Sequence record: NC_061443.1
DNA length: 64,000 bases
Strand: one strand, 5' to 3'
In this document: positions 41,869-59,462 of the stretch, one piece after another
How positions within the stretch are numbered: the first letter of the stretch is position 1
Layout: each line of letters begins with the position of its first letter
Program-made: the position numbers and the translations under genes
The notes under the pieces: model-generated
What the model saw: only the letters and a program-made list of their open reading frames with translations
Told to the model about the DNA's origin: nothing
The model's database searches: none

Positions 41869-41872
41869 ATAG

Positions 41873-42069: not shown

Positions 42070-42783
42070 ATGCCTACTACTTCACGTCCTAAGACAGAAG
42101 ACAAGTTCTCCCGTGCTCGCGCTGCTAAGAACTCACCTGAACGTCAGGCAGCGGCTGCTAAGAAAACTCCACGAGGTCCTTCCTCGGTTCGTCCTAAATC
42201 AACGGCAGATCGTGAGCCTAAGATTCGTGACGAGGAGCGTGTGTACAATCTCGTACATGCAATTCTGAGCGCGTGGAAAGCTGATGTGGGACATGCCGAA
42301 AACACGGCAGCATCTGCTGGTATCATCAAAGTGTCTCGTCGTAAAATTGAAGGTGCATTGCGTGACCTCAAGAATACACGCTTCACTAAAATCCCGACGC
42401 TCATTAATGATATCCTGACAGGCTCTGATATCTGCGACGAGTTCGGCATGTGGGTGTACGTCGAGCACGATAGTCCTGATTGGATTTTCGTCCGTCTGCC
42501 TGATAACAGCACACCTGTGATTCGTGCCGATATCAGTTACGAAAAGACTGGCGAAAGGTCCGCGTCTGTCACAACGTCCAGTGAAGCACTCATGGAAACG
42601 TTCGACGACAATGAAGACGAAATCGAGATCGAAATCTTCGACTGCACTGAAAGCGATATTGAAGACCTCGAAGCTGCTGAGATGCGCAAGCGTCTGATCG
42701 ATGCGAAAATCATCAATCCAGAAGCTGCCCCGAAGCTGTCACGCAATGACTTAATGAAGCTCTGCGCGTACTACAGCGCATAA
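42070..42783 (+). CDS. protein with basic N-tail, acidic linker and C-terminal HEH-like module
   Basis: Ends DIEDLEAAEMRKRLIDAKIINPEAAPKLSRNDLMKLCAYYSA. Confidence 0.85.
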   Translation: MPTTSRPKTEDKFSRARAAKNSPERQAAAAKKTPRGPSSVRPKSTADREPKIRDEERVYNLVHAILSAWKADVGHAENTAASAGIIKVSRRKIEGALRDLKNTRFTKIPTLINDILTGSDICDEFGMWVYVEHDSPDWIFVRLPDNSTPVIRADISYEKTGERSASVTTSSEALMETFDDNEDEIEIEIFDCTESDIEDLEAAEMRKRLIDAKIINPEAAPKLSRNDLMKLCAYYSA

Positions 42784-42824
42784 GCAATAACGAGCAGGCA
42801 GCACGTACACTGCCTGCTATCTGC

Positions 42825-42885
42825 GAAGTATGCAGAAAACTGGACAAAATCGTGGTTGTTATCTGACGACCACCTATGCTATACT
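42825..42885 (+). promoter_or_regulatory. Class-1 phage promoter
   Basis: TGCAGAAAACTGGACAAAAT..TTGTTA..TGcTATACT, spacing 37. Confidence 0.8.
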
Positions 42886-42945
42886 TAATGCAGGTGCACA
42901 ACGCACCGCAAACAAAACTACCACTTATACTGAGGAGTATTAAAC

Positions 42946-44565
42946 ATGGCTCGTATCGAAACTAACACTAATCTGGTTGGCAAAACTATCGTCCTGCTGA
43001 ACGGCACCAAAGCTAAAATCGAAGATGCAATCGCGTCTGGTTACAAAGTGAAAGGCCAGACCAAACGTATCGCCACTCGCTGCGTTATCAAAGAAGGCGC
43101 TCACTTCAAAGAAATCGAGCGCATGAACATGAGCCTGCTGGAAGATACTGGCGAAGGTTATGTGAAGCTGAAAGACGCGAAAGCGGCGAAAGCGTCAACC
43201 AAGAAACCAGCGGCGAAAGAGAAAGCGCCGAAAGCAGATAAGAAAGCTGCGAAGCCTGCGAAAGAGAAAGAACCTAAGGTTCGTCGTAAGTCTTCAAAAG
43301 AGAAAGGCGACGAGTATCAAGATCTGGCACACGCTATCATCAAAGGCGGCAAACGTGCGGCGCCTGTTGAAATCGCTGAAATCGACGCTGACCTGACCGA
43401 CTGTGTTGCTCAACGTCTGGTAGACGTGTTGAACAATAGCGAAGTTGCGAAGCTGTGCGCCGATAACAAGACGCCGATCGCAAACGCAGTCGAAGTAACG
43501 TACGGCGCTGAGTTCGCTCCTGAGACGAACGTCATGCAGATCACGTTGAGCCTGCAATATGCGAAGCCTGTTCAAGCGCTGTCTCGTCCGACTCTGGAAA
43601 ACGCAGAAGCTATCGCGTTACGTGCTCAAAAAATGGCGGCGCCTAAGCTGTCTATGAAACTCAAGAAAGCGATTCGTGAAGCGTTCAGCCTTGAAGACGC
43701 TAACGACCTTGAGCTGGGCACTGTGTTGTTGTCTGACGGCGAAGAATTTGTGTACTTCGGCGAATCTGCGAAGCATGTCGGCAAAGCGCTGCTGTATGTC
43801 GTAGAGACCGACAAGTTCAAATCTGTGCTGGGTTCTACTCTGGGTGAGTATGAAATCCCAGACGAAGAAGACGGCGAAGAGGAAGAAGAAGAAGTCGAAG
43901 ACGAGTCCGAGGAAGAGGAAGAAGAGGATGAAGTCGAAGACGGCGAAGAAGAAGACGGCGAAGAAGAAGACGACGCCGAATATGAATACGTCGCAGTTAA
44001 CAAAGACCAGCTCGATATGGTCAACAAGAAAGTGACTGCCAAGTATCACGCTGCGCTGGCTGAACGATTCAATACGACCGAAGAAGTTCTGATTCCTGGC
44101 CTGATGCTGACTGATGGCGAAACTACTTTCGCTTATCTGGGCTGTGATAGTAAAGGCGGGCTGCTGGTAATCGACTGTGGTGATGAAGGCGAAGGTGAAG
44201 ACGTGCTGATGTATAGCAAGTCTGATATCAAACAGCTGGACGACTTCAATCCTGTGATGGGCGAAGCTGACGAAGACGGCGAAGAATCTGATGCCGAAGA
44301 AGACGACGGCGAAGACGGCGACGATGAAGAAGATCTGGATGATGAAGAAGACGGCGACGATGAAGAAGATCTGGATGATGAAGAAGGCGACGACGAAGAC
44401 GAAGACGACAACGACTTTGACTTCGACGATGTGCCAGAAGCTGATATCGAAGATCTGACCGAAGACGAACTGCGTGACCGCGTAGTTGAAGCCGGCCTGA
44501 CTACTCCGCGTAAAGCTGATAACATGGACGAAGCTAAACTGCGCAAGCTGCTGAAAAGCGCATAA
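42946..44565 (+). CDS. 539-aa polyampholyte: beta domain, K/A-rich tract, two acidic tracts, C-terminal HEH-like module
   Basis: Composition read from translation; ends DIEDLTEDELRDRVVEAGLTTPRKADNMDEAKLRKLL. Confidence 0.9.
   Translation: MARIETNTNLVGKTIVLLNGTKAKIEDAIASGYKVKGQTKRIATRCVIKEGAHFKEIERMNMSLLEDTGEGYVKLKDAKAAKASTKKPAAKEKAPKADKKAAKPAKEKEPKVRRKSSKEKGDEYQDLAHAIIKGGKRAAPVEIAEIDADLTDCVAQRLVDVLNNSEVAKLCADNKTPIANAVEVTYGAEFAPETNVMQITLSLQYAKPVQALSRPTLENAEAIALRAQKMAAPKLSMKLKKAIREAFSLEDANDLELGTVLLSDGEEFVYFGESAKHVGKALLYVVETDKFKSVLGSTLGEYEIPDEEDGEEEEEEVEDESEEEEEEDEVEDGEEEDGEEEDDAEYEYVAVNKDQLDMVNKKVTAKYHAALAERFNTTEEVLIPGLMLTDGETTFAYLGCDSKGGLLVIDCGDEGEGEDVLMYSKSDIKQLDDFNPVMGEADEDGEESDAEEDDGEDGDDEEDLDDEEDGDDEEDLDDEEGDDEDEDDNDFDFDDVPEADIEDLTEDELRDRVVEAGLTTPRKADNMDEAKLRKLLKSA
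44311..44382 (+). repeat. Perfect 36-bp tandem duplication (EDGDDEEDLDDE x2)
   Basis: GAAGACGGCGACGATGAAGAAGATCTGGATGATGAA at 44311 and 44347. Confidence 0.95.
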
Positions 44566-44647
44566 CGATCTAACGTAACATCGAAACACTGTGCGGCTCT
44601 CACGGGGCCGCATACTTGACAAATAAAGCTGATTGAGGAATCACACT

Positions 44648-45904
44648 ATGTCAAACGCAAACAAAATTCTGCTTAACGCTCGTGTACGCCGTTTAGACGG
44701 AACCAGCACCTACATCAACAAAGTGAACGCTAACGGCTATAGCACCGATGCGAAAGGCCCGCAGATTCCTGTGAAGCGTATCGTGTTTGCAGGCAAGACG
44801 CTGAAAGAGATTGAAGCGCCGTTCGAGAAAGGCGAGTATGTCATTGTGCAGGGCGTTGCAGTGAAGCTGAACAAGCGCCAGCAACGTGAACTGGCGGATA
44901 ACACTCTCGACGAAAAAGCGCTGCGTCCTGACTTCGGACGTCTGGCATTCATCGACCGCGATGACGGCAAAGCAACTGACGGCAAGAAAGTGAAGCCGAA
45001 AGCTGAGAAGAAAGAAGGCGGGTTGAAAGCAACTCGCAAGCAGAACGGTGACAAGCGCACCAAGAAAGAGCGCAAGGCAGAGAAGGCGAATCTGAAAGAC
45101 GACCTCGACTTCATCGCGTCTGACAAGATCGACCGTAAAGCTGAACTGGCTCACATCATCGACGCTACCATCGAAGACTGCAACACTAAAGAGCGCCGCA
45201 AGCTGCTGTCTGACTCGTTTGACATGGACTGGAAAGACATTAAGAAGCACGGCGGTAAGGGTGTCGTCAAACACATGGGACGCAAAGCCGCTCAAGCTGC
45301 TGTGAACAAAATGAGCGCGACTGTTACTCAAGACGCATTCATCAAACAGATGCCTGCTGAGTTGAAGCGACTGATTGCTGACCGTCGCCTCGTACTGAAC
45401 AAGCGCCAGATAGAAGCTGTGCTCTCTGCGCTTGGGCTTGACGTGAAGTTCTATAACATCGCAATGCAGACGCTGCTGGGTAATCTGTCGCTCGCTGTGG
45501 ATGACACGCTGGTCAAGCCTAAGGCTGAGAAGCCTGCAAAGCTGAAAAAGCACAAGCAAGCGAAGCCGCAGTATCTGACTGAGAAAGACCAGCAACGTCG
45601 CATGAAGAAAATGAAAGTGAAGCTGTTGGCGCCTACTGAGAAAGGCATGAAGAAAGCCAAAGCGCATTTGAAACAGGCGAAAGTAATTCTCGCAAATAAG
45701 CTGGGCATCACGTCGAAAGAAATCAAACGTGGTCTGATTGCGTATCGCCCGAACGGCGTGGACTATATGTTCGTTGCCAGCGATGCGCGCGGCCCGATCT
45801 TCATCGACAAGCACGGCGACCCATGCGTGTACACTTACGAGAATCTCGAAGCAACTTTCGACTTCACTTTGAACAAACCTTCTGAACTGGATGCTACTGT
45901 ATGA
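44648..45904 (+). CDS. Lys-rich basic protein, paralogue of 42946 at both ends
   Basis: N-terminal LNARVRRLDGT..ANGY..G..KEIE aligns with LVGKTIVLLNGT..ASGY..G..KEIE of 42946. Confidence 0.85.
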   Translation: MSNANKILLNARVRRLDGTSTYINKVNANGYSTDAKGPQIPVKRIVFAGKTLKEIEAPFEKGEYVIVQGVAVKLNKRQQRELADNTLDEKALRPDFGRLAFIDRDDGKATDGKKVKPKAEKKEGGLKATRKQNGDKRTKKERKAEKANLKDDLDFIASDKIDRKAELAHIIDATIEDCNTKERRKLLSDSFDMDWKDIKKHGGKGVVKHMGRKAAQAAVNKMSATVTQDAFIKQMPAELKRLIADRRLVLNKRQIEAVLSALGLDVKFYNIAMQTLLGNLSLAVDDTLVKPKAEKPAKLKKHKQAKPQYLTEKDQQRRMKKMKVKLLAPTEKGMKKAKAHLKQAKVILANKLGITSKEIKRGLIAYRPNGVDYMFVASDARGPIFIDKHGDPCVYTYENLEATFDFTLNKPSELDATV

Positions 45905-46284
45905 TTAATAGTGAGGTCATTCTGACTGGTGTTTTCGCTCAACTGTATTCGCGGCTAGTAATGGCCGCTATACAGCGCGTCCATGTATACTACTCTGATC
46001 TCGCACCTGTCATCTTCGGCGTACAGTTTACGCGCATGGGAAAAGCGCAGTATAAAGCACTGGAAGCGCTCGTTGTGGAAACGATGCGCGTTGATATTAA
46101 AAACGGCCGTCCGCCTATAGCGGCCATCTATGTGTCACGAGCAAACGACACTAAGAAGCCGACCCAGTCCTTCTTTGATGAATACGAAAGACTGACTGGG
46201 AAGCGACTCACTGACGATGAATGGTTGGTGCTCGTTGAACAAGTGTGGAAACAATATGCACCAGACCTTCGGGAGCCATCATGA
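45901..46284 (+). CDS. hypothetical protein, possibly winged-helix DNA-binding
   Basis: GRPPIAAIYVSRANDTKKPTQSFF recalls a G.P.ls.lvV....P..GFf pattern; weak. Confidence 0.6.
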   Translation: MINSEVILTGVFAQLYSRLVMAAIQRVHVYYSDLAPVIFGVQFTRMGKAQYKALEALVVETMRVDIKNGRPPIAAIYVSRANDTKKPTQSFFDEYERLTGKRLTDDEWLVLVEQVWKQYAPDLREPS

Positions 46285-46742
46285 AAAAGTCAAAAGTTGT
46301 AATTAGCCGTGGTGGGTATCGACCCGTATCGGCAGAAGAAGCAAAGAAGTTGGTTGTTGAAATGCTGCTTGCCTCCATCGGCGTTGACCCGACAATTCTG
46401 AGCCAGCAGATGTTGTTGAACATTGCGAACTACAATTACCTGACGTCTATTGTAGACACGGGCAAAGCGAATACTGCGAACCAGACAGTTCTGCATAAAA
46501 CTGTAAAAGAACTTAATGCGTTCTGTAGATTGCACAAGATTCCTCTGGGCTTACTAATTATGCCCCATACATCGGCAAGTGATTACTCCGGTGACGAGGT
46601 TGTAGCGATTCCCTGGGAGTCTGTGCGCAAGAACGCATCGAGCCAGTCCGCTGTCAACTCCCTGTTCCAAACAGTCGAAGCTGATGGCTATCCGCAGTTT
46701 GTGACTGATGCGAAAACAGTAGAGGACTACAATGTTTTATGA
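46281..46742 (+). CDS. hypothetical protein
   Basis: ATGA overlap, GGGAG RBS. Confidence 0.75.
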   Translation: MKKSKVVISRGGYRPVSAEEAKKLVVEMLLASIGVDPTILSQQMLLNIANYNYLTSIVDTGKANTANQTVLHKTVKELNAFCRLHKIPLGLLIMPHTSASDYSGDEVVAIPWESVRKNASSQSAVNSLFQTVEADGYPQFVTDAKTVEDYNVL

Positions 46743-48012
46743 TCACGTATTCAACCACGACGAGAAGCAATTGCTCCTGAATGTGGCTGAGACTCGATAT
46801 CTGGTGCGGCTTGATTGCCCTGAGTATTTGAAGAAGTCAAAACACTCGATTGAAATTCGCCATACAGTTACCAACCGTGGTGAGCAACGTCGAAGCGGTG
46901 TTGTTAACACAACGTTTGTGCCGCGTATTCACGCCTCAACTGTGCAGCGCCTGTTACGTGAAATACGTGACAACGCAACTGTCAGTTCGGCAAACAGTCT
47001 GGCTGCATTGTTTGAGCTGGGACTTGGTGTGCCGAAGCAACGTGATATCGCAACGTACCTGCGTGACTACTCTCGGGAGAACGATAAGAAAGGCGTGGGT
47101 ATCAAGTATATCCGCAAGCTGGTAAATGAGTATCACCGCAAGCACCGCCATAGTTTTGCGGGTAGTCGCTGGATGATGCCTGCCGCTTACACGGCGAACT
47201 TGCTGAACATGCAGTCCTTCATTCATCTGAAAGAAGACGGCTATAGCAAGAAAGTGAAAGTGCCTGACGGTCTGCCTGTTGTTCTGATCTATCATAACAC
47301 GAACCACGCCGAGTCTGAGTTCTCTCTGTGTGACGCATTCGCTATTAGCCCGCTGGGTTATCCTATGCCATTCGCCCAGATTGCTCTACGCCCAGAGTTC
47401 AAAGCTGTGCCGAAGACGTTTCAATCTAAAGCGCTGCGTGGGCAAGGCATGTACAGCATGGTGATGGGCATTGTTCACTGGGCAAAGGGCGATGCGCTGA
47501 CGAACGTCCGTGAGCTAAACGCTATCGACGATGACCCGTACCTGACGTTGCTTGCAAGTGACCAGTATGCTGATCGTCGTTCGCCTGAGTATCAAGAACT
47601 GCTGGACAAACGCGCTGCATTCGCTGAACAGCGCCATGAGTGGACAGAAGTGCTTGCGAAGTATGGCAACACAACACGTACACTCAAGCCTAAGCAGTTA
47701 GAACGATTGGCGCAGGCAGAAGACTTCTTCAAAGAACGTAAATCGTTTATGGACGAGTTTGATAAGTTCGAGAAGAAAGAGAACCACCACGCTGCTAAGA
47801 AGTTCGCAGTAGCCAGTGCGCAATTCGCTGCCGTTGACTGTGGTACCATCGCTGACCGTTCAACGTATATGTCCGTTGCTTCTGGCCTCGACAAGGTACA
47901 CAAGATTCTCACGAAGTGGGGATTCACCACGGTCGATACTGTTAATAGTAGTTTGAAGAAATCAATCCTTACATTCGACCCAACAACCGCTACTCGCGTG
48001 TGGTCACTGTAA
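46732..48012 (+). CDS. putative GNAT-fold acetyltransferase with insertions and a Sel1-like repeat
   Basis: IALRPEF-(12 aa)-RGQGMYSMVM resembles motif A; HKILTKWGF resembles motif B; NSLAALFELGLGVPKQRDIA is Sel1-like. CDS certain, function tentative. Confidence 0.5.
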   Translation: MFYDHVFNHDEKQLLLNVAETRYLVRLDCPEYLKKSKHSIEIRHTVTNRGEQRRSGVVNTTFVPRIHASTVQRLLREIRDNATVSSANSLAALFELGLGVPKQRDIATYLRDYSRENDKKGVGIKYIRKLVNEYHRKHRHSFAGSRWMMPAAYTANLLNMQSFIHLKEDGYSKKVKVPDGLPVVLIYHNTNHAESEFSLCDAFAISPLGYPMPFAQIALRPEFKAVPKTFQSKALRGQGMYSMVMGIVHWAKGDALTNVRELNAIDDDPYLTLLASDQYADRRSPEYQELLDKRAAFAEQRHEWTEVLAKYGNTTRTLKPKQLERLAQAEDFFKERKSFMDEFDKFEKKENHHAAKKFAVASAQFAAVDCGTIADRSTYMSVASGLDKVHKILTKWGFTTVDTVNSSLKKSILTFDPTTATRVWSL

Positions 48013-48038
48013 ACACAACTTATCTGAGGAGATAACGC

Positions 48039-51000
48039 ATGTCTGACAATAACCTGGGCGCTGCTGCAACATTCGGCTCTGAGACTCAAAAGCAATTAAA
48101 CGACCAACAGCGTCGTGCGCATTCTGCTGAGTCCGGCCACGTAAACAAATGTACCATCGTCGTGCTGACTGCGCTTAACGCGCACGGCCGCTTCTCTTTC
48201 CTGACCTCTGACGAGCAACTGCGTGAACGGTCCATCGAAGGTAAAGTGATGGACCGTCTGCCGGATCTGATTGGACGTGCATCAGGCCCGTCTACTGACC
48301 CGAACAGCGCGTACCACATTCTGCATCCGAACAACGGCGTGCCAACTCGCATTGACGAGCGCATCAAAGTTGGCGAAGCGGATTCGGTCATCATTTCATA
48401 TACTGTAAATAAAGCAGTGTCAGAGATGTATGGCAGTTTATCGCTGGCGCTGTTTAGTGCTGGTGAAAGTGATATCGCTGATTTGGCGGCTGAGTTTGGT
48501 ATTCACTCCATCTCAATCGTTGAAGAAGCGAAAGCGCCTGACTATATCAAAGCTCTTACTGAACAGGTAGAAGCTCTGAATATTGTAAATCTCACTAGCA
48601 TTGATGAAACTGACGGTGCTTTTGAGAAACCAGTAATCGACTACAGCATCCTGCCGGGTAACCCAATCAACGTACTGTCCGGCGCTGTGCGTACTTTCAT
48701 TATGCAAACTCTAAACGGCGAAGTATTCGCTGCGATTCCAAATAACGGAGAACTGAACGTGAAACAACCTACTAACGCAACGCCGGTCAATCTGGACGAA
48801 GACTTCGACGCAGAAGACGAAGTGATTGATCAGCAGGGCGGCGAAAGCGACGAAGACGAAGTGACAGGCACTGACCTGTTTGGCTATAAGGCCGAAACGC
48901 TGACCGTCGCGCAAATGACAGAAGCTCTTGAAGCTCTGTCGTATGATGTTAGCGCGATGGACGAAGCTGGCATCCGTGAGTCGTTCGAAACTGAACAGCA
49001 AATCTGGATGGAAGGTAACGACGAAGCTGGCTCTGACGATGAAGGCGAAGAAGAAGAAGACGCCGAAGAAGACGGCGAAGAGGAAGAAGAAGATGAAGAT
49101 TCTGACTTCGACCCTTCACTGTATCTCGGCCACCTGCTGTCTGCTGACCAGCTTGATCGCACGGCGCTGAAAGTCCTGGTTCGCACTCAGGACCTGAAAG
49201 TCATGAAGTCTGACACCGAAGAAACTCTGACGGCGAAACTGCTGGAGCTGGTTGAAGGTGCGACTGAGCAGGAAATGGCTGAACTGATCGACACCTTCGT
49301 TGCTGCGCTGCAAGAGCGTGAGATCGATTGTCCGAACCTGCTGGCCGCTCTGGCGTCTGATGAAGACGAAGAAGAAGACGGCGAAGAAGAGGAAGATGAA
49401 GACGATTCTGAGGAAGAAGATTCCGAAGAAGACTCTGATGATTCTCAATCTGTGCAGGACCAGATCGATGCAGTGACTGACCCGCTCGATTACTTCCTGT
49501 TCCCTGGCGGTTCCCTGACTGCTGAACAGCGTTCTGCTGCTGTCGAAGCGATGGGCGAAGATGTTGCTGGACTGAACATCGTTCAGGTAATGAAAGCGTT
49601 CTCTCGCATCCAGGCGCAGTCTAACGAAATCGACGTTGACGCAGAAGAAAGCGAAAGCAACGTTGCTGAACTCGAAGCGCTGCTGGGCCAGTACGACGAT
49701 GCTACCGTACAGCACATTGCAGAAAGCCTGGGCGTTAACGTTGACGAATGCGAAAGCGTTGACGATATGATCGAAGCGATTGTTAGCGGCGGCACCGAAG
49801 ACCAGTTCGCTGCGGTTGAAGAAATCGCAACTAACTACGGCATTGACCTGTCCGAAGTTGCAGAAGGCGAAGACCTGGAGTTTGTTGACGCGCTGCTGGC
49901 TGTGCTGCCTGCGTTCTTGTCTGACGACGAGCAGGACGAAGAAGCCGAAGAGTCTGATGAAGACGAAGCGGAAGAAGACGGTGAAGACGACACCGATGAA
50001 GAAGACGAAGGCGACCATGAAGTGATTGATGCTTCTGAAAACGAAAACCTGCGCTTCATCAAAGCTGTCGATACTGAAAACGCTGTCGGCACGTTGCTTG
50101 CTGTTGACATGGACCAGACTGTCGTTATCAACTTCACTCTGACTGACGGCGATACCTACGCTGCTGTAGAATCTGAGCTGTCTGATATCAACGGCTTCAA
50201 CTACCGCTTCCCGTTCAACCTGGGTAAAGCGTCTAAAGGTACTGCGCCAGGTTCAATGCTGCTGCCAGCTCAATCTCTGCTGGACATTGTTGAGCGCGTT
50301 AACACTACCCGCTTCCTCGCCGACCCTAAAACGTTCGACGTCGGTGCGTGGGCTGAAAGTCTGGAAGCAACGCTGGCAGAAGAAATCCCTGTCGCGCTGT
50401 ATGCTGATCGTATCGAAGACGGTATGGACCCAAGCGAAGCCGGTCTGGTTGTTGGTGACTTCCTCGACGAAGAAGAACTGGCTGCTGCCGCTGACCTGGG
50501 CCACATCGACGAAGACGAAGCTGCTGAACTGAACGGTGACCATCTGCCACTGGCAAGCCTGTACAACGCCCGCTCTCGCGTTCGTCCTGTGCAAGTTGAT
50601 ACCGCTTATGTTGCTCTGCACACCACAGTGATGAACATCGCACTGCCGGGCTTCTGGAGCGAAGCGCCAGTACAGCGTATGATTCAGGCCGCAGTTAATC
50701 GCGTTATCAATCTGGCGGAAAGCGTTGAAGGCATTAAAGTGTACGCAGCATTCACTCTGGAATCTGCCGCACTGCTGAACAACGGCCGTCTGTTTGAAGC
50801 GCTGTCAACTCTGCGTGAGTTCGAAAACGTCCAGTCTTACTCTGCTGCTGATGCCGCAAACTTCGACGATGCAGAAGATGTGATCGAAGTAGCTGGCTCA
50901 CTCGACTCTCGTGACCTGCCGCTGTCTGTACTGGCTGGTGGTCTGGCTGGTGCAACGTTCGACAACGGCGGCGACCTGACGATTCTGGTTCCGTGCTTCA

Positions 51001-51053: not shown

Positions 51054-51078
51054 TATCTCGTCTAGCGTGTAACTGAAT

Positions 51079-51108
51079 GGGTGGCTCGAAAGGGCCACTC
51101 ACTTTTTT
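51079..51108 (+). terminator. Rho-independent terminator
   Basis: GGGTGGCTC-GAAA-GGGCCACTC then TTTTTT. Confidence 0.85.
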
Positions 51109-51122
51109 GGGGATCTGTAAAC

Positions 51123-51944: not shown

Positions 51945-52697
51945 TCTGTAAAAGTTACCTGTAATCGAATCTGTAAACACTAATTGAAGTTCGAACCGAG
52001 CAACAAGCTCACACTTATAAATCCCGGAGCATTACAATGGCTAAAGCATCAAAGACTTCCCTGGTACCTACCCTGGTTTCTCGCATCGCTAAAAAATCTG
52101 GCTCTATCGGTACTTCTAAAGTTAAGCCTTCTGAACTGCCGCACGATATCCTGATCGAAACGGTACAGGCTGTTGAGCTGATTGGTTTCATCACCGACCG
52201 CACTGAAAACAGCGTTACCATTCGTCACAAACGCGGTCATGGTTCTTCTGCGCAAGTTGTTTCTACCTTCGGTCCGAACCAAATCCTGTCTGTGCTGGGT
52301 GAAGCTGGTGGTCACGGTAGCGTAATTGCTCTGATCAACGCGCCGGTTCGTGAGTACAAAGGCTTCAACGTTAAATACAAAGGCGCGACCATCGTTGCTA
52401 CCTCTGTTGAGACTGGCGAAGTAGTTGAAGTGAACACCGCACTGCCTGGCTTTACCGTTCGTTCAACTGTGAACGAAACTGCTGCTGCTAAAAAGTACGG
52501 CACGCCTGCTCCGACCAAAGCTAAAAAGCTGGACAAAGGCGACAAAGCTGGTAAGCCTGCGAAAGCGGTAAAGAAAGCAAAAAAGTAAGTAAGTCTGACG
52601 AAGACTTCTAACTTTCGAAATCTGTAAATATTAAGTATGCAGCGAGATAAAAATGTTTCGCTGCCTGTCTCTCGAAATCTGTAAACATTAATTGAAG
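51944..52697 (+). promoter_or_regulatory. Class-2 motif (TCGAA)ATCTGTAAA(C/T)A(C/T)TAA, four copies; candidate phage-specific late/middle promoter
   Basis: Copies at 51944, 51969, 52620, 52677; AATCTGTAAACAyTAATTGAAG at 51968 and 52676 differ by one base; also at 51113 and 59466. Confidence 0.65.
52037..52588 (+). CDS. basic protein: beta-rich core with K/A-rich tails
   Basis: High-expression codons; ends KAKKLDKGDKAGKPAKAVKKAKK. Confidence 0.85.
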   Translation: MAKASKTSLVPTLVSRIAKKSGSIGTSKVKPSELPHDILIETVQAVELIGFITDRTENSVTIRHKRGHGSSAQVVSTFGPNQILSVLGEAGGHGSVIALINAPVREYKGFNVKYKGATIVATSVETGEVVEVNTALPGFTVRSTVNETAAAKKYGTPAPTKAKKLDKGDKAGKPAKAVKKAKK

Positions 52698-52732
52698 CAA
52701 CATCGCTTCTAATCAAACAGGAAATAAATATC

Positions 52733-53542
52733 ATGGCAAAAGCTAAAGCAACCGCAAATACCGCAGCAACCGTTCTGGCTAAAATGCTGGGCGTCGTAGT
52801 CGAAAACGCCAGCGCTGCTGACATTGCAGCAATCCTGAAAGAAGCCGGTCTGACTGTTGTTGGCGGTAAAGTTGTTAAAGCTGAAAAAGGCGGTAAAGCT
52901 GCTAAAGGCAAAAAGGCCAAAGCACCTACCGTTGCTGAAATCGTCGCTGCTGTTAAGGACGAAGAAGAACTGGACATCTCTGCTGTAAGCGAAGATGATC
53001 TGCGCGCCGCAGTTGTTAAAGCGAAGCTGTCCACCGCTAAGAAAGCAAAAGCGCTGGACGAAGACGAACTGCGCGAACTGCTGAACGATAGCCTGGGTGG
53101 CGAGTCCGAAGAGGACGACGAAGAAGAAGAGGACGAAGACGAAGACGAGGACGAAGACGACTCGGACGACGAAGAAGACGGCGACGACGAAGACGAAGAC
53201 GAAGACGAAGACGGCGACGACGACTCGGATGATGAAGACGAGGACGAAGACGACGAAGACGACGAAGACGGCGACGACGAAGACGAAGACGAGGACGAAG
53301 ACGAGGACGAAGATGACGAGGACGAAGATGAACTCGACCTCGACGCACTCGACAAGAAAGAGCTGTTAGCTCTCGTCCTCGAACATAAGCTGGCGCCGGC
53401 TAAGAAAGCCAAGAAAATGGACGAAGATGAACTGCGCGAACTCTGCGAAGAACATTTCGGCGGCGAAGACGACGAAGACGAAGACGAAGATGAAGACGAC
53501 GAAGACTTCGACGACGAAGACGAAGACGAAGACGACGAATAA
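52733..53542 (+). CDS. K/A-rich N-terminus plus two HEH-like modules embedded in poly-D/E tracts
   Basis: DISAVSEDDLRAAVVKAKLSTAKKAKALDEDELRELL and DLDALDKKELLALVLEHKLAPAKKAKKMDEDELRELC. Confidence 0.9.
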   Translation: MAKAKATANTAATVLAKMLGVVVENASAADIAAILKEAGLTVVGGKVVKAEKGGKAAKGKKAKAPTVAEIVAAVKDEEELDISAVSEDDLRAAVVKAKLSTAKKAKALDEDELRELLNDSLGGESEEDDEEEEDEDEDEDEDDSDDEEDGDDEDEDEDEDGDDDSDDEDEDEDDEDDEDGDDEDEDEDEDEDEDDEDEDELDLDALDKKELLALVLEHKLAPAKKAKKMDEDELRELCEEHFGGEDDEDEDEDEDDEDFDDEDEDEDDE

Positions 53543-53594
53543 GTCCTGATCTGAACCGGCCTGCCCCTCTAGTTCTAACGAATGAGCGAGGGGC

Positions 53595-53624
53595 AAATAA
53601 TCGAAAAAAATATCTCGATTATTT
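53595..53624. repeat. 10-bp inverted repeat AAATAATCGA-N10-TCGATTATTT in AT-rich intergenic region
   Basis: Read directly; upstream of the H1-like gene. Confidence 0.8.
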
Positions 53625-53760
53625 TCGTAAAAAGTTTTAAAATTCCTGTTGTTGTATGTTGAACATAATAATGTATGACTACAGGAAAACAAACCTGAAT
53701 AAATTTATCTTTTCATCCAGCGGTGAAAACGCCGCATCAAATATAAAGTAAGGAAATATC

Positions 53761-54288
53761 ATGTCTAAGAAAGCAATCAGCGGCCTGAACAAAGAAATCC
53801 GCGCAATCGAAAAATCTGAAAAAGCTCTGGCCAAAACCGCTGGCGAGATCACTAAGCAAGCTGAAAGCCTGTCTGAGCGTCGTGCTGGTCTGACTGCACA
53901 AGTTGAAGCGTTGCAGAACGACGGCGCCGCTCCGGCTAAAGCTCCGAAAGCAAAAGCGGCTAAAGCAGAGAAAGCTGCTAAGCCTGCCAAAGCTGAAAAA
54001 GCTGGTAAGAAAGCTAAAGCTGAAAAGGCTGAGAAGCCTGCTAAAGCTGAGAAGGCCGGTAAGAAAGCTAAAGCAGAGAAAGCTGAGAAGCCTGCTAAAG
54101 CTGACAAGAAAGCTAAAGGCGCCAAAGCTGAAAAGCCAGCTAAAGCAGAAAAAGCTGGTAAGAAAGCGAAAGCTGAAAAAGCTGCTAAGCCTGAAAAAGC
54201 TGGCAAGAAAGTGAAAGGCGACAAGGCTGCTAAAGCCGGTAAGAAAAGCAAAAAAGAAGCCGAAGACTTCGACTTCGATATGGAATAA
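53761..54288 (+). CDS. histone H1-like (AlgP/Hc2-type composition) DNA-binding protein with N-terminal coiled coil
   Basis: About 4-5 imperfect 18-aa repeats KAEKAxKPAKAEKAGKKA (54-bp period); acidic tail EAEDFDFDME. Confidence 0.85.
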   Translation: MSKKAISGLNKEIRAIEKSEKALAKTAGEITKQAESLSERRAGLTAQVEALQNDGAAPAKAPKAKAAKAEKAAKPAKAEKAGKKAKAEKAEKPAKAEKAGKKAKAEKAEKPAKADKKAKGAKAEKPAKAEKAGKKAKAEKAAKPEKAGKKVKGDKAAKAGKKSKKEAEDFDFDME

Positions 54289-54321
54289 GCAAGCGCCGCG
54301 CATTAGCGGTACTTGATTCGA

Positions 54322-54352
54322 AAGGGCAGCGCCGACGGGCGTTTGCCCTTTT
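54322..54352 (+). terminator. Rho-independent terminator
   Basis: AAGGGCAGCGCC..GGGCGTTTGCCCTTTT. Confidence 0.85.
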
Positions 54353-54385
54353 GTCATATCTGTCTCGAAATTTGAGGATAATCGA

Positions 54386-54868
54386 ATGTCTGCCGAACAT
54401 CTGCTTAACGACGACCTGCCTGACGACTCCACAGTTGTCCCTGTCCTTAAACAGGACAAGCCTTCCTACTACGACTTGATGACGCTACGCTTAGAAGCTG
54501 GCTCTCGTCTTGCTCGCGCTCTCAAAACTCTGGTCGATGCGCATGTCATTAACGGACCTGCCCTGAAAGATCTTCTTCCTGCCGCGTTGCGTATCTCTGA
54601 AACTCACTGGGCTGATATATGCAACGGCTTAACTCCTATCCACGACGAGAACAATAAAATCACGCTTGTCGGTAACCTGCCTGCTTGCATTGAAGCGTTT
54701 CGCATTGTTGTAATGGAACATGCTCAACGTAACGCACTGGAACTGGAGTGCCGCAACATGATTAGCCACGCAGAAGGTTTCAAAATTCTGACCCAGCCTC
54801 AAACACTACAGATTGAGCCACTACACTTCTGCGATGGAACCTGCGACCATGACACAAAAACTGTCTGA
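54386..54868 (+). CDS. hypothetical protein
   Basis: GAGGA RBS. Confidence 0.75.
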   Translation: MSAEHLLNDDLPDDSTVVPVLKQDKPSYYDLMTLRLEAGSRLARALKTLVDAHVINGPALKDLLPAALRISETHWADICNGLTPIHDENNKITLVGNLPACIEAFRIVVMEHAQRNALELECRNMISHAEGFKILTQPQTLQIEPLHFCDGTCDHDTKTV

Positions 54869-55379
54869 GCAAATCAACCGCTATTTTAATCTCATGGAGA
54901 AAATCCGTGAGCAACTCTTTCGTGTGCTGAACGTGTCCGATCGCTACCTGTGCATCGTGAGCTTTAACACCCAGCATCAGGCAATGCAGTGCGACCTAGT
55001 TAGTCGTGAGAGCCTGCTGCCCGCCAAGCTACTCGAAGGTCTTAGTGGTCAGGAGCTTGTAGTGTACGGCACCATTACTGCCCAGATTGAGAAATGGGTA
55101 GCAGACGGTATGAGCGACGACTTCCCGATTACGCAAGATGCCGATACCTACGCGCAGTATCGCAAGCTGGTGGACCCTGAGCAAGAGCCTGCTATCTCTG
55201 ACGCTGACTTGGCAGAGCATGTTGCTTCACTGCCTAAGTCTGACGCCCTGAAGTATGTTGACCCTCTGAGTAAGTATGAGCTGTCTATCATCTGCAAAGC
55301 GTGGGGACTCGCTCAAGATGTTAGTGAGTCTGTCATGCTGTCTCTCATTAAAGGTCACATTCTGCGCCGCGCTCCCTAA
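54849..55379 (+). CDS. hypothetical protein with C-terminal SAP/HEH-like motif
   Basis: VDPLSKYELSIICKAWGLAQDVSESVMLSLIKGHI. Confidence 0.7.
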   Translation: MTQKLSEQINRYFNLMEKIREQLFRVLNVSDRYLCIVSFNTQHQAMQCDLVSRESLLPAKLLEGLSGQELVVYGTITAQIEKWVADGMSDDFPITQDADTYAQYRKLVDPEQEPAISDADLAEHVASLPKSDALKYVDPLSKYELSIICKAWGLAQDVSESVMLSLIKGHILRRAP

Positions 55380-55383
55380 CTCA

Positions 55384-55442
55384 AACTCTGCATATTTCTG
55401 GACAGAACGTGGGTAGCGTCTAATACTAAAGTGTGATATAAT
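55384..55442 (+). promoter_or_regulatory. Class-1 phage promoter for topoisomerase genes
   Basis: AACTCTGCATATTTCTGGACAGAA..TGaTATAAT, spacing 36. Confidence 0.8.
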
Positions 55443-55513
55443 AAGCGTAGGACAAGTAGTGTCTGCATATGCTAATATCGAGTAGTAATGCTACTCATTA
55501 GGAGAACACGAAA

Positions 55514-57541
55514 ATGGCCAAAGCGCCGAAAGCTGCCAAAGTAAAAAAGAACACGGGTGATGGTTCCCAAGAAGGGTTCGTCATCGCGGAAGGACTTGAC
55601 GGTATTCGTCTTAATCCAGGGATGTACATGGGGGAACGCGGTGCCGATATGGCATACCGTGGTGTGAAAGAACCTGTCGATAACGTCTATGACGAATTGA
55701 TGGCAGGTCGCACCAAAGTTCTGGAGGTCGTAATCGACTACGACAAAGACCTGAACATCGTTGCCGATATGGCGAAAGGTATTCCGACCGACTTCAAGAA
55801 ATTGAAAGATGGCTCGAAAGAAACGATCATGACCGCAGCATTCAGTCGTGCTCACGCAGGTGGCAAGTTCAATGATCAGGCATACAAGACCTCTGCCGGT
55901 ACTCACGGCGTAGGCGTAGCGGCACTGAACGCAATCTCAAGCCAGCTTCGTGTGTGGTCAATGTACAAAGGCGGCTGCGCATACCAGATGTGGGAATGCG
56001 GCGTAGCGAAGTCAGGCAAGGACCCGAAGCAAGTCAAAGCCGTAGACAAAGATGTCATGAGCGCCTTGCGTGAGAAGAAGCATAGCAAGTACGGTACGAT
56101 TGTCGCGTGGACACTCGACCAGACTGTTGTGTCTGCTGACGTACAGCGCGGTAAGAAGCTGCCTAAGAACTTCCGTCACGCATCACCTGACCCGAAACGC
56201 ATCGGCGAGTGGTTGCGCAACATGTCTCTGCTTAACCCAGGCTTCGAGATTCGCCTGACGTTGATTAGAAAGGGCAAGCGCAAAGAGTTCACGTTCCACA
56301 ACAAGAAAGACCTCGCGTTTATCGTGAAGACGATGGTAGAAGAACGTGAGTTAGAACTTGTCGGTAAGCCGTTCACGTTCCAGCATGAGAACATCACGGC
56401 AGCACTCGCATGGACAGATCATGCAGACACTGACAACTTCTTGTCATTCGTTAACACCAGCCCTACAGTTGACGGCGGCTGGCACGTTGTTGGTTTCCGT
56501 GACGCGCTGTTCGATGCCATCAAACCTTTCATGAAAGAGCCGAAAGGTAAAGGCAAGAAGAAACAGGGCTTCAAACAGGAAGACTTGCTTATCGGCCTGA
56601 CGGGTATGTTCGACTGGCGTATGCACGGTGCTCAGTATACGTCACAGGTTAAAGACAAGCTGGCGAGTCGTGTTGAAAAAGAAGTGTACGAGCTGCTGAA
56701 AGACCAGCTTGTGAAATACTTCAAGGACAACAAGAAGGTCGCAACGACGATCATCAAACGTGCCGAAGCGATGAACAAGGGACGTGAAGAACTGTCCGCT
56801 GTCGTTAAGTCTATGGCGGACACGAAGAAGAAGCTGAAAGGCAACTCGCTTCCTGCTGACCTGATCTCTGCGCTCAAGTGTAAGCCTCATGAACGTGAGC
56901 TGGTTGTTGTAGAAGGTGACTCTGCTGGCGGTACTGCGAAACATGCGCGTAACCCTGATCATCAGGAAGTCATGCTCGCTGGCGGTAAACCTCTGAACGG
57001 TCTGAAAGCCTCACTGGCAGATGTGCTCAAGCATAAAGAAGTGCAGGGCATGTTAGTCTCTGTTGGTGCTGACCTGAAATCGCTTGACCCGAAAGCTGAA
57101 AACCCAACGTTGAGCACGAAGAACCTGCGCATCGGTAACTTACTTTTCCTGATGGATGCTGACCCAGACGGCTTCCACATTGCAACGTTGTTCCTCGGTG
57201 TAATCTATCGTCTGCTGCCTGACTTGATGAAAGAAGGGCGTGTGTGGATCGTCGATGCACCTCTGTATAACGTGATGCACAAGGGCAGCCACTATGGCGG
57301 CATGACGTTCGAAGAATGTCGAGACAAAGCACCTTCTGCTGTAAAAGACAAAGAGATTGTACGCGCTAAAGGTTGGGGTGAAGTTGAGCCTGACGTGCTT
57401 GAAGCTATCGCGTTCAATCCGAAGACTCGCCGCTTGATTCGTGTTAACCCGTTCGTTAGCGTAGAGCAAGAGCGTTTCTTCCGTGGTGTTGTGGCAGAAG
57501 ATGCCGTGCATCGTCGTCGTCTGCTGGGGCTGGAGGATTAA
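55514..57541 (+). CDS. gyrB: Type IIA DNA topoisomerase subunit B (GyrB/ParE-like)
   Basis: EGLDGIRLNPGMYMG, EPVDN, HAGGKF, GTHGVG (GHKL ATPase); VEGDSAGG, DADPDGFHI (TOPRIM). Confidence 0.95.
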   Translation: MAKAPKAAKVKKNTGDGSQEGFVIAEGLDGIRLNPGMYMGERGADMAYRGVKEPVDNVYDELMAGRTKVLEVVIDYDKDLNIVADMAKGIPTDFKKLKDGSKETIMTAAFSRAHAGGKFNDQAYKTSAGTHGVGVAALNAISSQLRVWSMYKGGCAYQMWECGVAKSGKDPKQVKAVDKDVMSALREKKHSKYGTIVAWTLDQTVVSADVQRGKKLPKNFRHASPDPKRIGEWLRNMSLLNPGFEIRLTLIRKGKRKEFTFHNKKDLAFIVKTMVEERELELVGKPFTFQHENITAALAWTDHADTDNFLSFVNTSPTVDGGWHVVGFRDALFDAIKPFMKEPKGKGKKKQGFKQEDLLIGLTGMFDWRMHGAQYTSQVKDKLASRVEKEVYELLKDQLVKYFKDNKKVATTIIKRAEAMNKGREELSAVVKSMADTKKKLKGNSLPADLISALKCKPHERELVVVEGDSAGGTAKHARNPDHQEVMLAGGKPLNGLKASLADVLKHKEVQGMLVSVGADLKSLDPKAENPTLSTKNLRIGNLLFLMDADPDGFHIATLFLGVIYRLLPDLMKEGRVWIVDAPLYNVMHKGSHYGGMTFEECRDKAPSAVKDKEIVRAKGWGEVEPDVLEAIAFNPKTRRLIRVNPFVSVEQERFFRGVVAEDAVHRRRLLGLED

Positions 57542-57543
57542 TC

Positions 57544-57798
57544 ATGTTCAACGTTTCAAACATACCTGACGGCACGATGGTACGTTTTCTCGATATGCCT
57601 GCTGTGCAATATCCACCGCTGACTGACGAACAACGCGATCAGTGTGAAGCACTCATGGTCAAAGCGCGTGAACTGACGAAGGACGTTAGTGTGTCTGGGT
57701 TCACTATCGTTGACGGCAAACTGAATGAGCGTGTGCAGATTCAAATGCGCCGCACAACTCTCGATAAGATTAATGCGATTGCCAAAGGAGAACAGTAA
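57544..57798 (+). CDS. small hypothetical protein between topoisomerase subunits
   Basis: GGAGG RBS; coupled to both neighbours. Confidence 0.7.
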   Translation: MFNVSNIPDGTMVRFLDMPAVQYPPLTDEQRDQCEALMVKARELTKDVSVSGFTIVDGKLNERVQIQMRRTTLDKINAIAKGEQ

Positions 57799-59462
57799 TG
57801 GCAATTACGCCGAAGAAAGTGAAAGTCAAAAAGGTTAAGCCTACAGCGACTGCCGTTGCGAAGACAGCTAAGCCTGCAAAGCTCAAGTCGAAAGCTGTGT
57901 CAGTTGACGACATTAAGAAGAAGAAAAAGAAAAGCACGGACGTGTCTGCGCATGTGCCTGTCGGTACGTCACTCTATCCGATGCTCGGTCAAGACGAGTC
58001 TCTGATTCGTGACGAGAACCTTGCGGACTATACGCGACGTGCTCTCTTCCAGTATGGCTCATACGTTGTTGAAGACCGTGCTATCGCTGACTATCGTGAC
58101 GGCCTCAAGCCTGTGCACCGTGCGTTACTCTGGTCGCTGTCTGACTTGGGCTTACGTCCGGGCGGCGCGTTCAAGAAAGCTGCGCGTACTGTTGGTGATG
58201 CGTTAGGTAAGTATCACCCACACGGCGATGCTGCTTGTTACGGTGCGATGGTAACGATTGCAAATACAGTGCCTCCTGCTGTATCTGGTCAGGGTAACTG
58301 GGGCGACCCAGTAGCGCCCGCCGCTGCGATGCGTTACACCGAAGCGAAAATGAGTAAGTTTGCTGGCGCGTTCTTGCTCGACCCTGACTATCTCGAAGTC
58401 ACGCCGATGGTAGACAACTTCTCGAACGACATGAAGCTGCCTCTTTATCTGCCTGCGCTGCTTCCGTACATGTTGTTCAACGGCTCTGTGCCAGCTCCTG
58501 CGTATGGCGTTAAGTGCGGTAACCCGTCGTTCAGCTTTACGTCTGTCGCCAAAGTCGTGTGTGACATGCTTAACGGCAAAGAGTACGACGCGAAGAAACT
58601 CGCCAAGACTCTTGAAATCAACCACGAGTATGGCTGTCTCGATGCAAGCTCTGACGCTGACTATCTCGCATTGCTTGAGACCGGTCGCGGTAAAGTCACA
58701 TACGAACCTCAGATGAAGGTTGACGAGAAGACCAAGACCATCACTGTGCAGACGTATGTGCCTGGCGGTATGTCGAACAACGCGGCTATCACGAAGAAGC
58801 TGGAGAAGATTGCAGAGTGGCAGGGCGTTGTCTCTGCATCGAACGCAAGCTCGAAGAAGAACAAAGACGCAGGCCCGTGGGGCGCAGCGTTTGCTATTCG
58901 TTGTCGTGGTAGCGAAGACCTGCTGTATGAAACTGCTGAACGTGTTCGTAAGGAAATCACAAGCGCGATCAACTACTCGCTGGGTGTGACCGTCCGCCGC
59001 GCTGATGCGTCAAACAAGTTCATGTACCTGAGCTACGTGAAGTATTTCAAAGCGTGGATTGCGTATCGCGTGAAGCTGGAAACGGCGATGCTCACGAACA
59101 AGAAGGCGAAAGCAGAGAAAGCCCTTCATCTGCAAGAAGTCTTCTTGTGGGCAGTTGACAACATGAAAACTCTGTTGGCTGCATTGCCGAAAGCTCTGAC
59201 CGCAGAAGACCCAGACAAGACGCTGGCGAAGCTGTGTAAGATTCCTCAAGAAGATGCGAAAATCATCCTCGACCGTCAAGTGCGTAAACTGGCTAAACTG
59301 GAACGTGCCGGGCTGGTGGCTAAGATCAAAGAAATCAAAGCCGAGATTGCAGAGTACAAAGCCGGTCTGAAAGAACCAGGCAAGTATGCTGCGGCAGGCA
59401 CTGCTGCGAAAGTCAAAGCGTATATTAAATCGCCTGACGATAAGATGCCTGTCGGTCTGTAA
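57798..59462 (+). CDS. gyrA: Type IIA DNA topoisomerase subunit A (GyrA/ParC-like), lacking C-terminal pinwheel, with Lys-rich N-tail
   Basis: DGLKPVHR, GKYHPHGD, GQGNWG, AAAMRYTE (catalytic Tyr); only 554 aa. Confidence 0.95.
   Translation: MAITPKKVKVKKVKPTATAVAKTAKPAKLKSKAVSVDDIKKKKKKSTDVSAHVPVGTSLYPMLGQDESLIRDENLADYTRRALFQYGSYVVEDRAIADYRDGLKPVHRALLWSLSDLGLRPGGAFKKAARTVGDALGKYHPHGDAACYGAMVTIANTVPPAVSGQGNWGDPVAPAAAMRYTEAKMSKFAGAFLLDPDYLEVTPMVDNFSNDMKLPLYLPALLPYMLFNGSVPAPAYGVKCGNPSFSFTSVAKVVCDMLNGKEYDAKKLAKTLEINHEYGCLDASSDADYLALLETGRGKVTYEPQMKVDEKTKTITVQTYVPGGMSNNAAITKKLEKIAEWQGVVSASNASSKKNKDAGPWGAAFAIRCRGSEDLLYETAERVRKEITSAINYSLGVTVRRADASNKFMYLSYVKYFKAWIAYRVKLETAMLTNKKAKAEKALHLQEVFLWAVDNMKTLLAALPKALTAEDPDKTLAKLCKIPQEDAKIILDRQVRKLAKLERAGLVAKIKEIKAEIAEYKAGLKEPGKYAAAGTAAKVKAYIKSPDDKMPVGL

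Follow-up and report, generated by a model that had tools for sequence, protein, structure and literature searches.

A conserved, topoisomerase-linked block of oppositely charged disordered proteins in jumbo phage pEa_SNUABM_2: a candidate electrostatic organiser of phage DNA

The window analyzed here, the last 64 kb of the 265-kb genome of the Erwinia jumbo phage pEa_SNUABM_2 (Alexandravirus; NC_061443.1), contains a block of strongly charged proteins adjoining the two subunit genes of a type IIA topoisomerase; all features described below lie on the + strand. The open reading frames named in the original prediction have matching CDSs in the RefSeq record (gp316-gp331), with the same coordinates and strand, and the charged block claimed for 42070-59462 is real, although its true start lies upstream, at gp309 (37439..39061), which is followed by gp313 (40396..41076) and gp315 (41412..41810). 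The charged proteins fall into two groups, namely the polycations gp326, gp324 and gp318, and the polyanions or blocky polyampholytes gp325, gp322 and gp317 together with gp309, gp313 and gp315. Eleven D/E tracts are spread over six proteins, and eight of the 11 tract-bearing genes fall in a single 18-gene run (permutation p = 0.0017, over the 93 genes gp244-gp336, 92 of them wholly inside the window and gp244 beginning 800 bases to its left), which bears out the predicted clustering; a scan of a further 50 kb of the same genome found no D/E tract of a comparable kind. Our genome-wide statistics cover the window and loci L004 and L010, and not loci L002, L003, L005-L007 and L009. Imperfect tandem codon repeats underlie the low-complexity tracts, and the long minus-strand ORFs across 52.3-54.5 kb are by-products of them. 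The module shares its block with a sigma factor, SSB and UvsX, i.e., a non-structural region. Scans of all module proteins against Pfam, PHROGs, NCBIfam and PADLOC recovered only phage families of unknown function and topoisomerase domains, and PDB sequence searches with gp317, gp318, gp321, gp322, gp324, gp326 and the 45-aa module described below recovered nothing significant. The proposed unit of polycationic and polyanionic proteins linked to a type IIA topoisomerase is supported as coherent.

Among the acidic proteins, gp313 (net charge -36) and gp315 (net -23) display D/E tracts at residues 132-170 and 87-114, respectively, and the 540-aa gp309 displays one at 339-375. Eight long D/E tracts in all are found in gp325, gp322 and gp317, at two to four per protein, much as had been predicted. 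gp317 (42946..44565; net -83) combines an N-terminal small beta domain, a K/A patch (76-115), two D/E tracts (297-351 and 437-504) and a C-terminal copy of the 45-aa module. The 1004-aa gp322 (48039..51053) is polyacidic (net -197), with four D/E tracts set between non-repetitive segments, and gp325 (52733..53542) consists of 47% D/E (net -98), with two D/E tracts and a K/A patch (43-69). Blocky segregation of opposite charges in disordered regions, a trait of charge-patterned condensate scaffolds, is seen in gp325 and gp317 (kappa 0.60 and 0.41, the latter being a blocky polyampholyte) and in the charge blocks of the phage SSB tail. The families of gp325, gp322 and gp317 are confined to this phage group. 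These proteins had been likened to nucleoplasmin/NAP-type chaperones: the long acidic tracts and the composition sustain the likeness, but homology does not, as Pfam yields no core chaperone domain in gp317, gp322 or gp325, and PDB sequences yield none for gp317 or gp322. The other prior suggestion, that the acidic proteins are DNA-mimic anti-defence factors, finds no backing in homology, with neither Pfam nor PADLOC returning a match to Ocr, ArdA or other anti-defence families.

The 45-aa module occurs in five copies: after the D/E tract of gp309 (module HMM E = 3e-8), at the C-terminus of gp316 (42070..42783; residues 191-237, following a basic disordered N-terminus and a globular middle), at the C-terminus of gp317 and twice in gp325 (76-122 and 197-243). 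Its alignment pattern is compatible with two short helices joined via an extended basic loop. The "HEH tethers" of the original prediction thus correspond to a genuine repeated module, but one for which isolated copies and distant orthologues have no SAP, HeH, LEM or Rho_N match in Pfam even at E ≤ 10, and whose profile has no PDB sequence match.

The long K/A repeats belong to gp326 (53761..54288), a 175-aa protein (K 29%, A 27%, net +26) with an N-terminal helical region of ~55 aa, a K/A/E/P repeat tract of 118 aa (residues 50-167) and an acidic-aromatic C-terminal tip. With more than 100 aa of K/A-rich low-complexity sequence and a net positive charge, it falls in the H1-like class by composition only: neither gp326 nor gp324 matches a Linker histone, Hc1 (PF07432), Hc2 or AlgP profile in Pfam, NCBIfam or PDB sequences, and the label "H1-like" therefore survives as a description of composition and not of homology. 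The K/A tract is kept in five lineages and the tip in all orthologues seen except the counterpart on a metagenomic contig (L014). Across the proteome, the acidic-aromatic motif is not enriched (2 observed versus 0.6 expected), so the motif is informative solely through being conserved at the gp326 C-terminus. Of the three proteins foreseen as strongly basic K/A-repeat proteins, gp326 alone fits. gp324 (52037..52588; pI 10) has a predicted all-beta core (residues 35-150, pLDDT ~90) followed by a disordered K/A tail of only 27 aa (157-183); its fold matches are weak and inconsistent, to small beta-barrel repeats, and in a viral structure library it matches its orthologues only, pointing to a fold specific to this phage group. 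The gp324 family numbers 64 clusters. gp318 (44648..45904; pI 9.9, net +34) is a basic paralogue of gp317, with which it has the N-terminal domain in common, and carries a K-rich linker and no true K/A repeat.

The remaining genes of the block are less charged. gp319 (45901..46284) codes for a small neutral protein whose position is conserved, with a counterpart in phage NCTB, and gp320 (46281..46742) for another small neutral one (phrog_33033). gp321 (46732..48012) is a conserved globular protein of 426 aa that had been read as a GNAT-like enzyme; we reject this assignment, as it has no Pfam family at E ≤ 0.1 and no GNAT among the Foldseek PDB matches of its AlphaFold model (pLDDT 79). Its best Foldseek matches are weak, to the adenylation domain of NAD-dependent DNA ligase (LigA; E 0.035, TM 0.22-0.29), a hint too faint to name it ligase-like, and reading the sequence by eye reveals no obvious nucleotidyl-transferase lysine motif. 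gp323 (51123..51944; 273 aa) has a coiled-coil-like N-terminal half. gp327 and gp328 (54386..55379), two small, mildly acidic proteins, occupy the interval between gp326 and the topoisomerase genes, and gp330 (57544..57798; 84 aa) sits between the two subunits.

The type IIA topoisomerase is recognized in Pfam (DNA_gyraseB, E 4e-27; Toprim, 1.5e-8; DNA_topoisoIV, 1e-57). gp329 (55514..57541) is GyrB-like, with ATPase, transducer, Toprim and GyrB C-terminal domains behind a basic N-terminal tail, and gp331 (57798..59462) is GyrA/ParC-like with a K-rich N-terminal tail of ~55 aa, in agreement with the basic subunit tails proposed before. Three other lineages have both tails too, with the charge retained while the sequence drifts, a pattern that may reflect selection on charge. 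Comparable tags are displayed by other DNA enzymes: acidic blocks alternate with basic ones along the phage SSB tail, in pEa_SNUABM_2 and PaBG alike, and UvsX is tagged with K/A at its N-terminus and ends in an acidic tail. Because terminase, portal and ParB-like proteins carry basic N-tags as well, such tags are not replisome-specific.

The block appears to be read rightwards from at least three predicted promoter types. Motif A, a sigma70-like predicted promoter with a conserved upstream box, is found ahead of gp316 (41822..41885), of the gp317-gp322 run (42840..42905) and of the topoisomerase II genes (55398..55460). Motif B (ATCTGTAAA) is found once ahead of gp323 (51113..51121) and in two copies each ahead of gp324 (51944..51977) and gp325 (52620..52685), and its TGTAAA core upstream of the gp325 orthologue is kept in five lineages. 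Elsewhere, motif B mostly precedes DNA-metabolism genes, and a variant of it also precedes the major head gene, which leaves room for late expression and packaging. A third, conserved element upstream of gp326 (53654..53688) includes a near-palindrome and is unlike motifs A and B. Terminator-like hairpins followed by a T run lie 3′ of gp322 (51078..51101) and of gp326 (54324..54353); the latter, GC-rich one was seen by eye and is not in the scan output.

Conservation of the clustering in relatives had been set beforehand as a test that could overturn the prediction, and the prediction passes it. Gene order and charge pattern are kept in five relatives, namely Dickeya phage JA11, Yersinia phage fHe-Yen9-02, the marine phage NCTB, the Pseudomonas phage PaBG and the uncultured 205-kb metagenomic contig L014, as is the domain layout, at protein identities of 20-50% or less, dropping to 20-35% or lower, and topoisomerase II adjoins the module in five of six lineages. 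For six core genes, the order and the sign of the charge persist where the sequences are hardly alignable. The lengths of the D/E and K/A tracts differ between relatives, and the non-repetitive parts (the N-terminal helix and tip of gp326, the 45-aa module and the N-terminal domain of gp317/318) are conserved. phiR1-37, considered as a close relative, lacks the module. As judged from comparative sequence analysis, the module belongs to the jumbo myoviruses grouped as "Lupandier", in which it is conserved and probably non-structural.

We tentatively favor the view that the module is an intracellular, DNA-associated electrostatic organiser, in which a nucleoprotein matrix held together by electrostatic cohesion would form on the phage's own DNA and work together with the phage topoisomerase II; this is a possibility to which we give a little less than even weight. 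In such a matrix, the N-terminal helix of gp326 might mediate self-association, with the K/A/E/P tract laid along the DNA, and gp324 (through its beta core and K/A tail) and gp318 could provide extra DNA contacts. The polyacidic proteins would bind the basic tracts of the module and the K-rich tags of topoisomerase II, UvsX and SSB, keeping the basic proteins soluble and exchangeable, with bridging potentially supplied by the repeated 45-aa module. In gp326, the short acidic-aromatic motif at the tip might act in docking or self-inhibition, and the matrix would be where topoisomerase II handles the 265-kb genome. Such a matrix could conceivably be a liquid condensate, compact the DNA or shield it from nucleases, as the original prediction proposed. 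This reading is favored by the composition and clustering of the charged genes, by the order, domain layout and charge pattern conserved across deep lineages, by the charge-conserved tails of topoisomerase II and the charge tags on SSB and UvsX, by the non-structural context and the placement of motif B ahead of DNA-metabolism genes, and by the conserved gp326 tip and the fact that the PaBG orthologues lie outside that phage's abundant virion proteins. Several observations count against it: no module protein has a recognized DNA-binding domain or a homologue with an established function; a whole-database search with gp326 returned only the K/A tails of ribosomal proteins; and the charge density of classic H1-type tails is well above that of the gp326 repeats, because the latter contain 12% Glu. 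It is further weakened by the motif B variant ahead of the major head gene and by the summed net charge of gp309-gp331, -359, an acidic capacity far above that of the module's basic proteins, which hints at other targets.

That excess is one point in favor of a host-directed alternative, which we regard as rather doubtful, though worth weighing. Here, the lysine-rich proteins would coat and silence the host chromosome, and the polyacidic ones would act as DNA-like decoys that absorb nucleoid or defense proteins. It would suit a module that is preceded by many small genes of early type in succession, has the sigma70-like motif A ahead of gp316 and gp317-gp322, and has a functional parallel in the chlamydial Hc1, which halts transcription on condensing DNA (as cited in PMC12619734). 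The tight and deep linkage to topoisomerase II and the K-tags on the phage SSB, UvsX and topoisomerase II point instead to transactions of phage DNA. Moreover, the DNA mimics described so far are small and folded, unlike D/E tracts of 20-100 residues, and no match to Ocr, ArdA or an anti-defense family of PADLOC or Pfam was found.

A more elaborate variant of the organiser, which we consider unlikely, would make the module the scaffold of a membrane-less and shell-less replication compartment. The polyanions gp325, gp322 and gp317 and the polycations gp326, gp324 and gp318 would co-condense with phage DNA, and the K/A tags and block-charged tails would serve as address labels that partition SSB, UvsX and topoisomerase II into the condensate.

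More improbable still is that these proteins enter the capsid together with the genome and serve there as counter-ions or ejection proteins, with the acidic ones being scaffold-like or removed. Giant phages do package many internal proteins, the major head gene has the upstream motif B variant just mentioned, and the rightward block that holds the module continues past the record's origin to the terminase and portal genes, which are ~8-14 kb downstream of it. Nevertheless, the head and tail gene blocks (43-186 kb) are far from the module, motif B chiefly precedes DNA-metabolism genes, and the PaBG orthologues (gp124-131) are absent from the 14 abundant virion proteins of that phage, as seen by a method insensitive to such sequences. 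Finally, the idea that the genes share no function and are unrelated neighbors with slippage-expanded tracts, a compositional coincidence, could draw on the tandem codon repeats, the variable tract lengths and the want of a functional domain uniting the genes, but is already disfavored and very improbable given that the order and charge sign of the six core genes outlast alignable sequence and that the promoter motif is conserved, as are the non-repetitive parts listed above.

To our knowledge, no means by which jumbo phages other than the Chimalliviridae organise or protect a replicating genome of ~260 kb has been described. The present analysis defines, with coordinates and conserved motifs, a deeply conserved, topoisomerase-linked set of disordered proteins of opposite charge, with matching charge tags on the phage SSB, recombinase and topoisomerase. 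Should the organiser on phage DNA prove right, it would be a chromatin-like or coacervate-like system without a described precedent among bacterial viruses and a natural case of charge patterning as a targeting code; in jumbo phages lacking chimallin, the compartment variant would offer a charge-coded counterpart of the chimallin nucleus, and a host-directed role would establish a new type of polyanionic decoy.

The closest compositional parallels of gp326 are the chlamydial Hc1/Hc2 and the Pseudomonas AlgP and PhaF, with which it shares a long, net positive, K/A-rich low-complexity tract. In the phasin PhaF, an N-terminal helical self-association region is joined to a K/A tail, a layout like that of gp326. 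In contrast to these proteins, to which it has no sequence relationship (no Pfam Hc1/Linker_histone and no NCBIfam match), gp326 has Glu-rich repeats and a conserved acidic-aromatic end, is phage-encoded and is accompanied by polyacidic partners and topoisomerase II. Its anchor, long flexible linker and short conserved acidic-aromatic motif also recall SSB-type hubs, in which a disordered linker and an acidic tip form a tethered docking peptide, but the gp326 linker is polycationic and the OB fold is absent. Among phages, the large aquatic "moraphages" encode histone H1-like proteins with no assigned role, for which genome compaction is a speculation (PMC12619734). Those proteins match the Hc1 family PF07432, unlike gp326, and the parts of that account drawn on here mention no acidic partners, repeated module or topoisomerase linkage, the word "topoisomerase" itself being absent on a search (PMC12619734). 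On the acidic side, long D/E tracts encoded beside genes for basic, potentially DNA-coating proteins would match the logic of nucleoplasmin/NAP1, in which a polyanion buffers a polycation, except that gp317, gp322 and gp325 lack the core domain (Pfam). The strongly acidic proteins could compete with DNA, as T7 Ocr and ArdA do, but whereas the latter are folded, the acidity of the module comes from disordered, homopolymer-like stretches of proteins that are 270-1000 aa in length. The Chimalliviridae nucleus is a protein-shell compartment for replicating DNA, whereas the present module is known from its genes; a study of the Chimalliviridae core genome included Alexandra for comparison only and is silent on chimallin in it. 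With the type IIA topoisomerase of T4-type phages, gp329 and gp331 share the GyrB-like and GyrA/ParC-like domains, and they differ from it in that both bear K-rich N-terminal tails whose charge is conserved.

The strongest result of our analysis is the conservation of the charged-protein module that lies beside the topoisomerase II genes of the Erwinia jumbo phage pEa_SNUABM_2. In line with the original prediction, its gene order is kept in related jumbo phages: the genes stand in identical order in 57 sequenced Erwinia, Dickeya and Yersinia phages, and Dickeya phage JA11 and Yersinia phage fHe-Yen9-02, whose gp321 orthologues are only 35-42% identical, retain the K/A repeats, D/E tracts and short non-repetitive ends. 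Homologues of the gp324 beta core extend as far as the marine phage NCTB and the Pseudomonas phage PaBG, whose neighborhoods, as read, hold the whole core set in unchanged order, namely a gp317-like protein (small N-terminal domain, basic patch, acidic tracts and 45-residue module), a gp321-like protein, an acidic gp322-like protein, a gp324-like protein, a poly-D/E gp325-like protein and a gp326-like protein (helix, basic repeats and acidic-aromatic tip). This set is followed by gyrB- and gyrA-like genes in NCTB and by a sigma factor, SSB and UvsX in PaBG. A set of 1.84 billion representative proteins contains 64 clusters (50% identity) of the gp324 family; one distant member, from a metagenomic contig of 205 kb, has R/A/K/P repeats and an acidic tail fused to it, and next to it come a helix-plus-basic-tail protein and then GyrB- and GyrA-like genes. 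Order and charge pattern thus persist across lineages with diverged sequences, and it is therefore these, not sequence, that are conserved.

Low complexity has misled the annotation of two proteins from these phages: the NCTB gp326 orthologue (NCTB locus L009:13514-14098) is publicly misnamed 'Large-conductance mechanosensitive channel', and a note on PaBG gp125 (PaBG locus L008:12544-12996) compares it with a ribosome assembly factor of eukaryotes. Separately, the GyrB-like ORF of the metagenomic contig (L014:8327-10042) continues after its Toprim GDSA motif into an unrelated segment that begins with Cys, with a separate Toprim ORF 3′ of it, and may be a split gene or contain an intein.

The window matches the final 64 kb of NC_061443.1 (265,442 bp, genus Alexandravirus) exactly, window coordinates being record coordinates minus 201,442. 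The genome has a rightward block that starts at 186 kb, crosses the origin and reaches 43 kb, and a leftward one between 43 and 186 kb that carries most virion genes. The module belongs to the former, downstream of the phage's own sigma factor (gp242), SSB, UvsX and about 60 small genes, with the topoisomerase II genes directly 3′; no multisubunit RNA polymerase is annotated in the genome. All genes from gp316 to gp331 are on the plus strand; apart from those of the two topoisomerase II subunits, they are annotated 'hypothetical'. Further on, gp333 (61067-61606) has a weak HNH endonuclease match, and gp334 (61539-62405), 'DNA topoisomerase' in RefSeq, has no Pfam match at E<=0.01.

Translations and charge statistics bear out the K/A repeats, D/E tracts and basic protein tails first noticed here, and the DNA encoding both tract types consists of imperfect tandem codon repeats. 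Of the 93 genes gp244-gp336, 11 bear such tracts, and eight of these fall within one 18-gene run (p=0.0017), and another 50 kb of the genome holds no D/E tract of comparable strength. The charged block is present as proposed, but its start at 42070 has to be moved, since gp309, gp313 and gp315 upstream belong to it. Two D/E-tract proteins lie outside the cluster, gp296 (29034-30230) and gp256 (10066-10425), the latter having 119 aa and 37% D/E from the ORF start at 10066 and 115 aa from the RefSeq CDS start at 10078. Long minus-strand ORFs over the charged genes (43618-44622, 44693-45814, 52312-53412 and 53737-54459) were rejected as genes, because the GAA/GAC and GCT/AAA codon repeats generate them as a by-product.

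Three types of upstream element accompany these genes. Ahead of gp316, gp317 and topoisomerase II stands motif A, a sigma70-like promoter whose upstream box (TCTGCA...CTGGACAAAAC...) is conserved; the window has five occurrences (about 26818, 41822, 42840 and 55398, and more weakly near 59480). Motif B (ATCTGTAAA) has eight copies in the window against 0.6 expected (2994, 51113, 51413, 51944, 51969, 52620, 52677 and 59466), all co-oriented with genes, and further copies in sequences L004-L007; one or two stand upstream of each of gp323, gp324 and gp325. Genome-wide, it is co-oriented with genes without exception and placed 35-70 nt upstream of DNA-metabolism genes, a variant preceding the major head gene, and its TGTAAA core upstream of the gp325 orthologue is kept in all five lineages. 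Motif B is probably a promoter type read with gp242. The third element, upstream of gp326 (53654-53688), is conserved, includes a near-palindrome, ATGTTGAACAT, that is common to JA11 and fHe-Yen9-02, is distinct from motifs A and B, and may be an operator.

gp325 has two copies of a 45-residue module, and gp309, gp316 and gp317 have one each; NCTB orthologues have up to four. An acidic tract usually precedes the module, which matches none of SAP, HeH, LEM or Rho_N, so that the label 'HEH tethers' has no support from family matches. In all lineages gp317 and gp318 have in common an N-terminal domain some 55 residues long; the two are paralogues, one now acidic and the other basic. The gp326 orthologues of five lineages end in a short acidic-aromatic tip; an FDFDM motif reminiscent of it precedes the K-rich C-terminal region of gp274 (18607-20229; 525-540 aa). 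The gp324 core has a confidently predicted all-beta fold, for which we recovered nothing significant in the PDB and orthologues only in a viral library. The proposed GNAT, gp321 (at 46732), has 20 homologues, exclusively in this clade, and neither Pfam nor PDB sequence matches; its AlphaFold model (pLDDT 79, pTM 0.74) weakly matches the adenylation domain of NAD-dependent DNA ligase alone (E 0.035, TM 0.22-0.29) and no GNAT, and the GNAT assignment is rejected.

Charge tags also mark other DNA enzymes of the phage. The basic N-tails of the topoisomerase subunits gp329 and gp331 keep charge, not sequence; the SSB gp243 (L010:296-583, record 200296-200583, immediately left of the window) ends in alternating poly-D/E and poly-K/S blocks, as does the PaBG SSB (L008:18632-19843) with six to seven charged blocks; and the 840-aa UvsX-like recombinase gp244 (window 1-1722, record 200642-203164) is tagged at its N terminus with a K/A-rich stretch and ends in an acidic tail. 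gp244 is also interrupted by about 340 inserted residues, starting with Cys and ending in His-Asn ahead of a Ser, that look like an intein.

We tentatively propose that the module would act as an intracellular, DNA-associated electrostatic organizer, a reading we favor because of the conserved polycation/polyanion pairing, the topoisomerase II linkage, the charge tags elsewhere and the non-structural context. A role directed at the host, as decoy or in silencing, appears rather unlikely, and is kept alive by the acidic excess (net charge of the module -359) and the early-type promoters. That the proteins are packaged is improbable, their orthologues being absent from the 14 abundant virion proteins of PaBG, as judged by a method insensitive to such sequences.

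We found no published treatment of the module in the literature searched, and a 2026 review of jumbo phage biology lacks the words 'condensate', 'histone' and 'phase separation'. The only related case found is that of the 'moraphages', which encode Hc1-family H1-like proteins of unknown function (PMC12619734). The original prediction had called the basic K/A-repeat proteins, gp326 among them, H1-like and had likened the acidic tracts to those of nucleoplasmin/NAP-type chaperones. gp326 matches none of linker histone, Hc1 or AlgP, its closest database matches being the K/A tails of ribosomal proteins, and the acidic proteins match none of NAP, nucleoplasmin, Ocr or ArdA; because such family matches are lacking, both likenesses are analogies rather than memberships, gp326 being akin to H1-type proteins, and the acidic proteins to histone chaperones, in composition.
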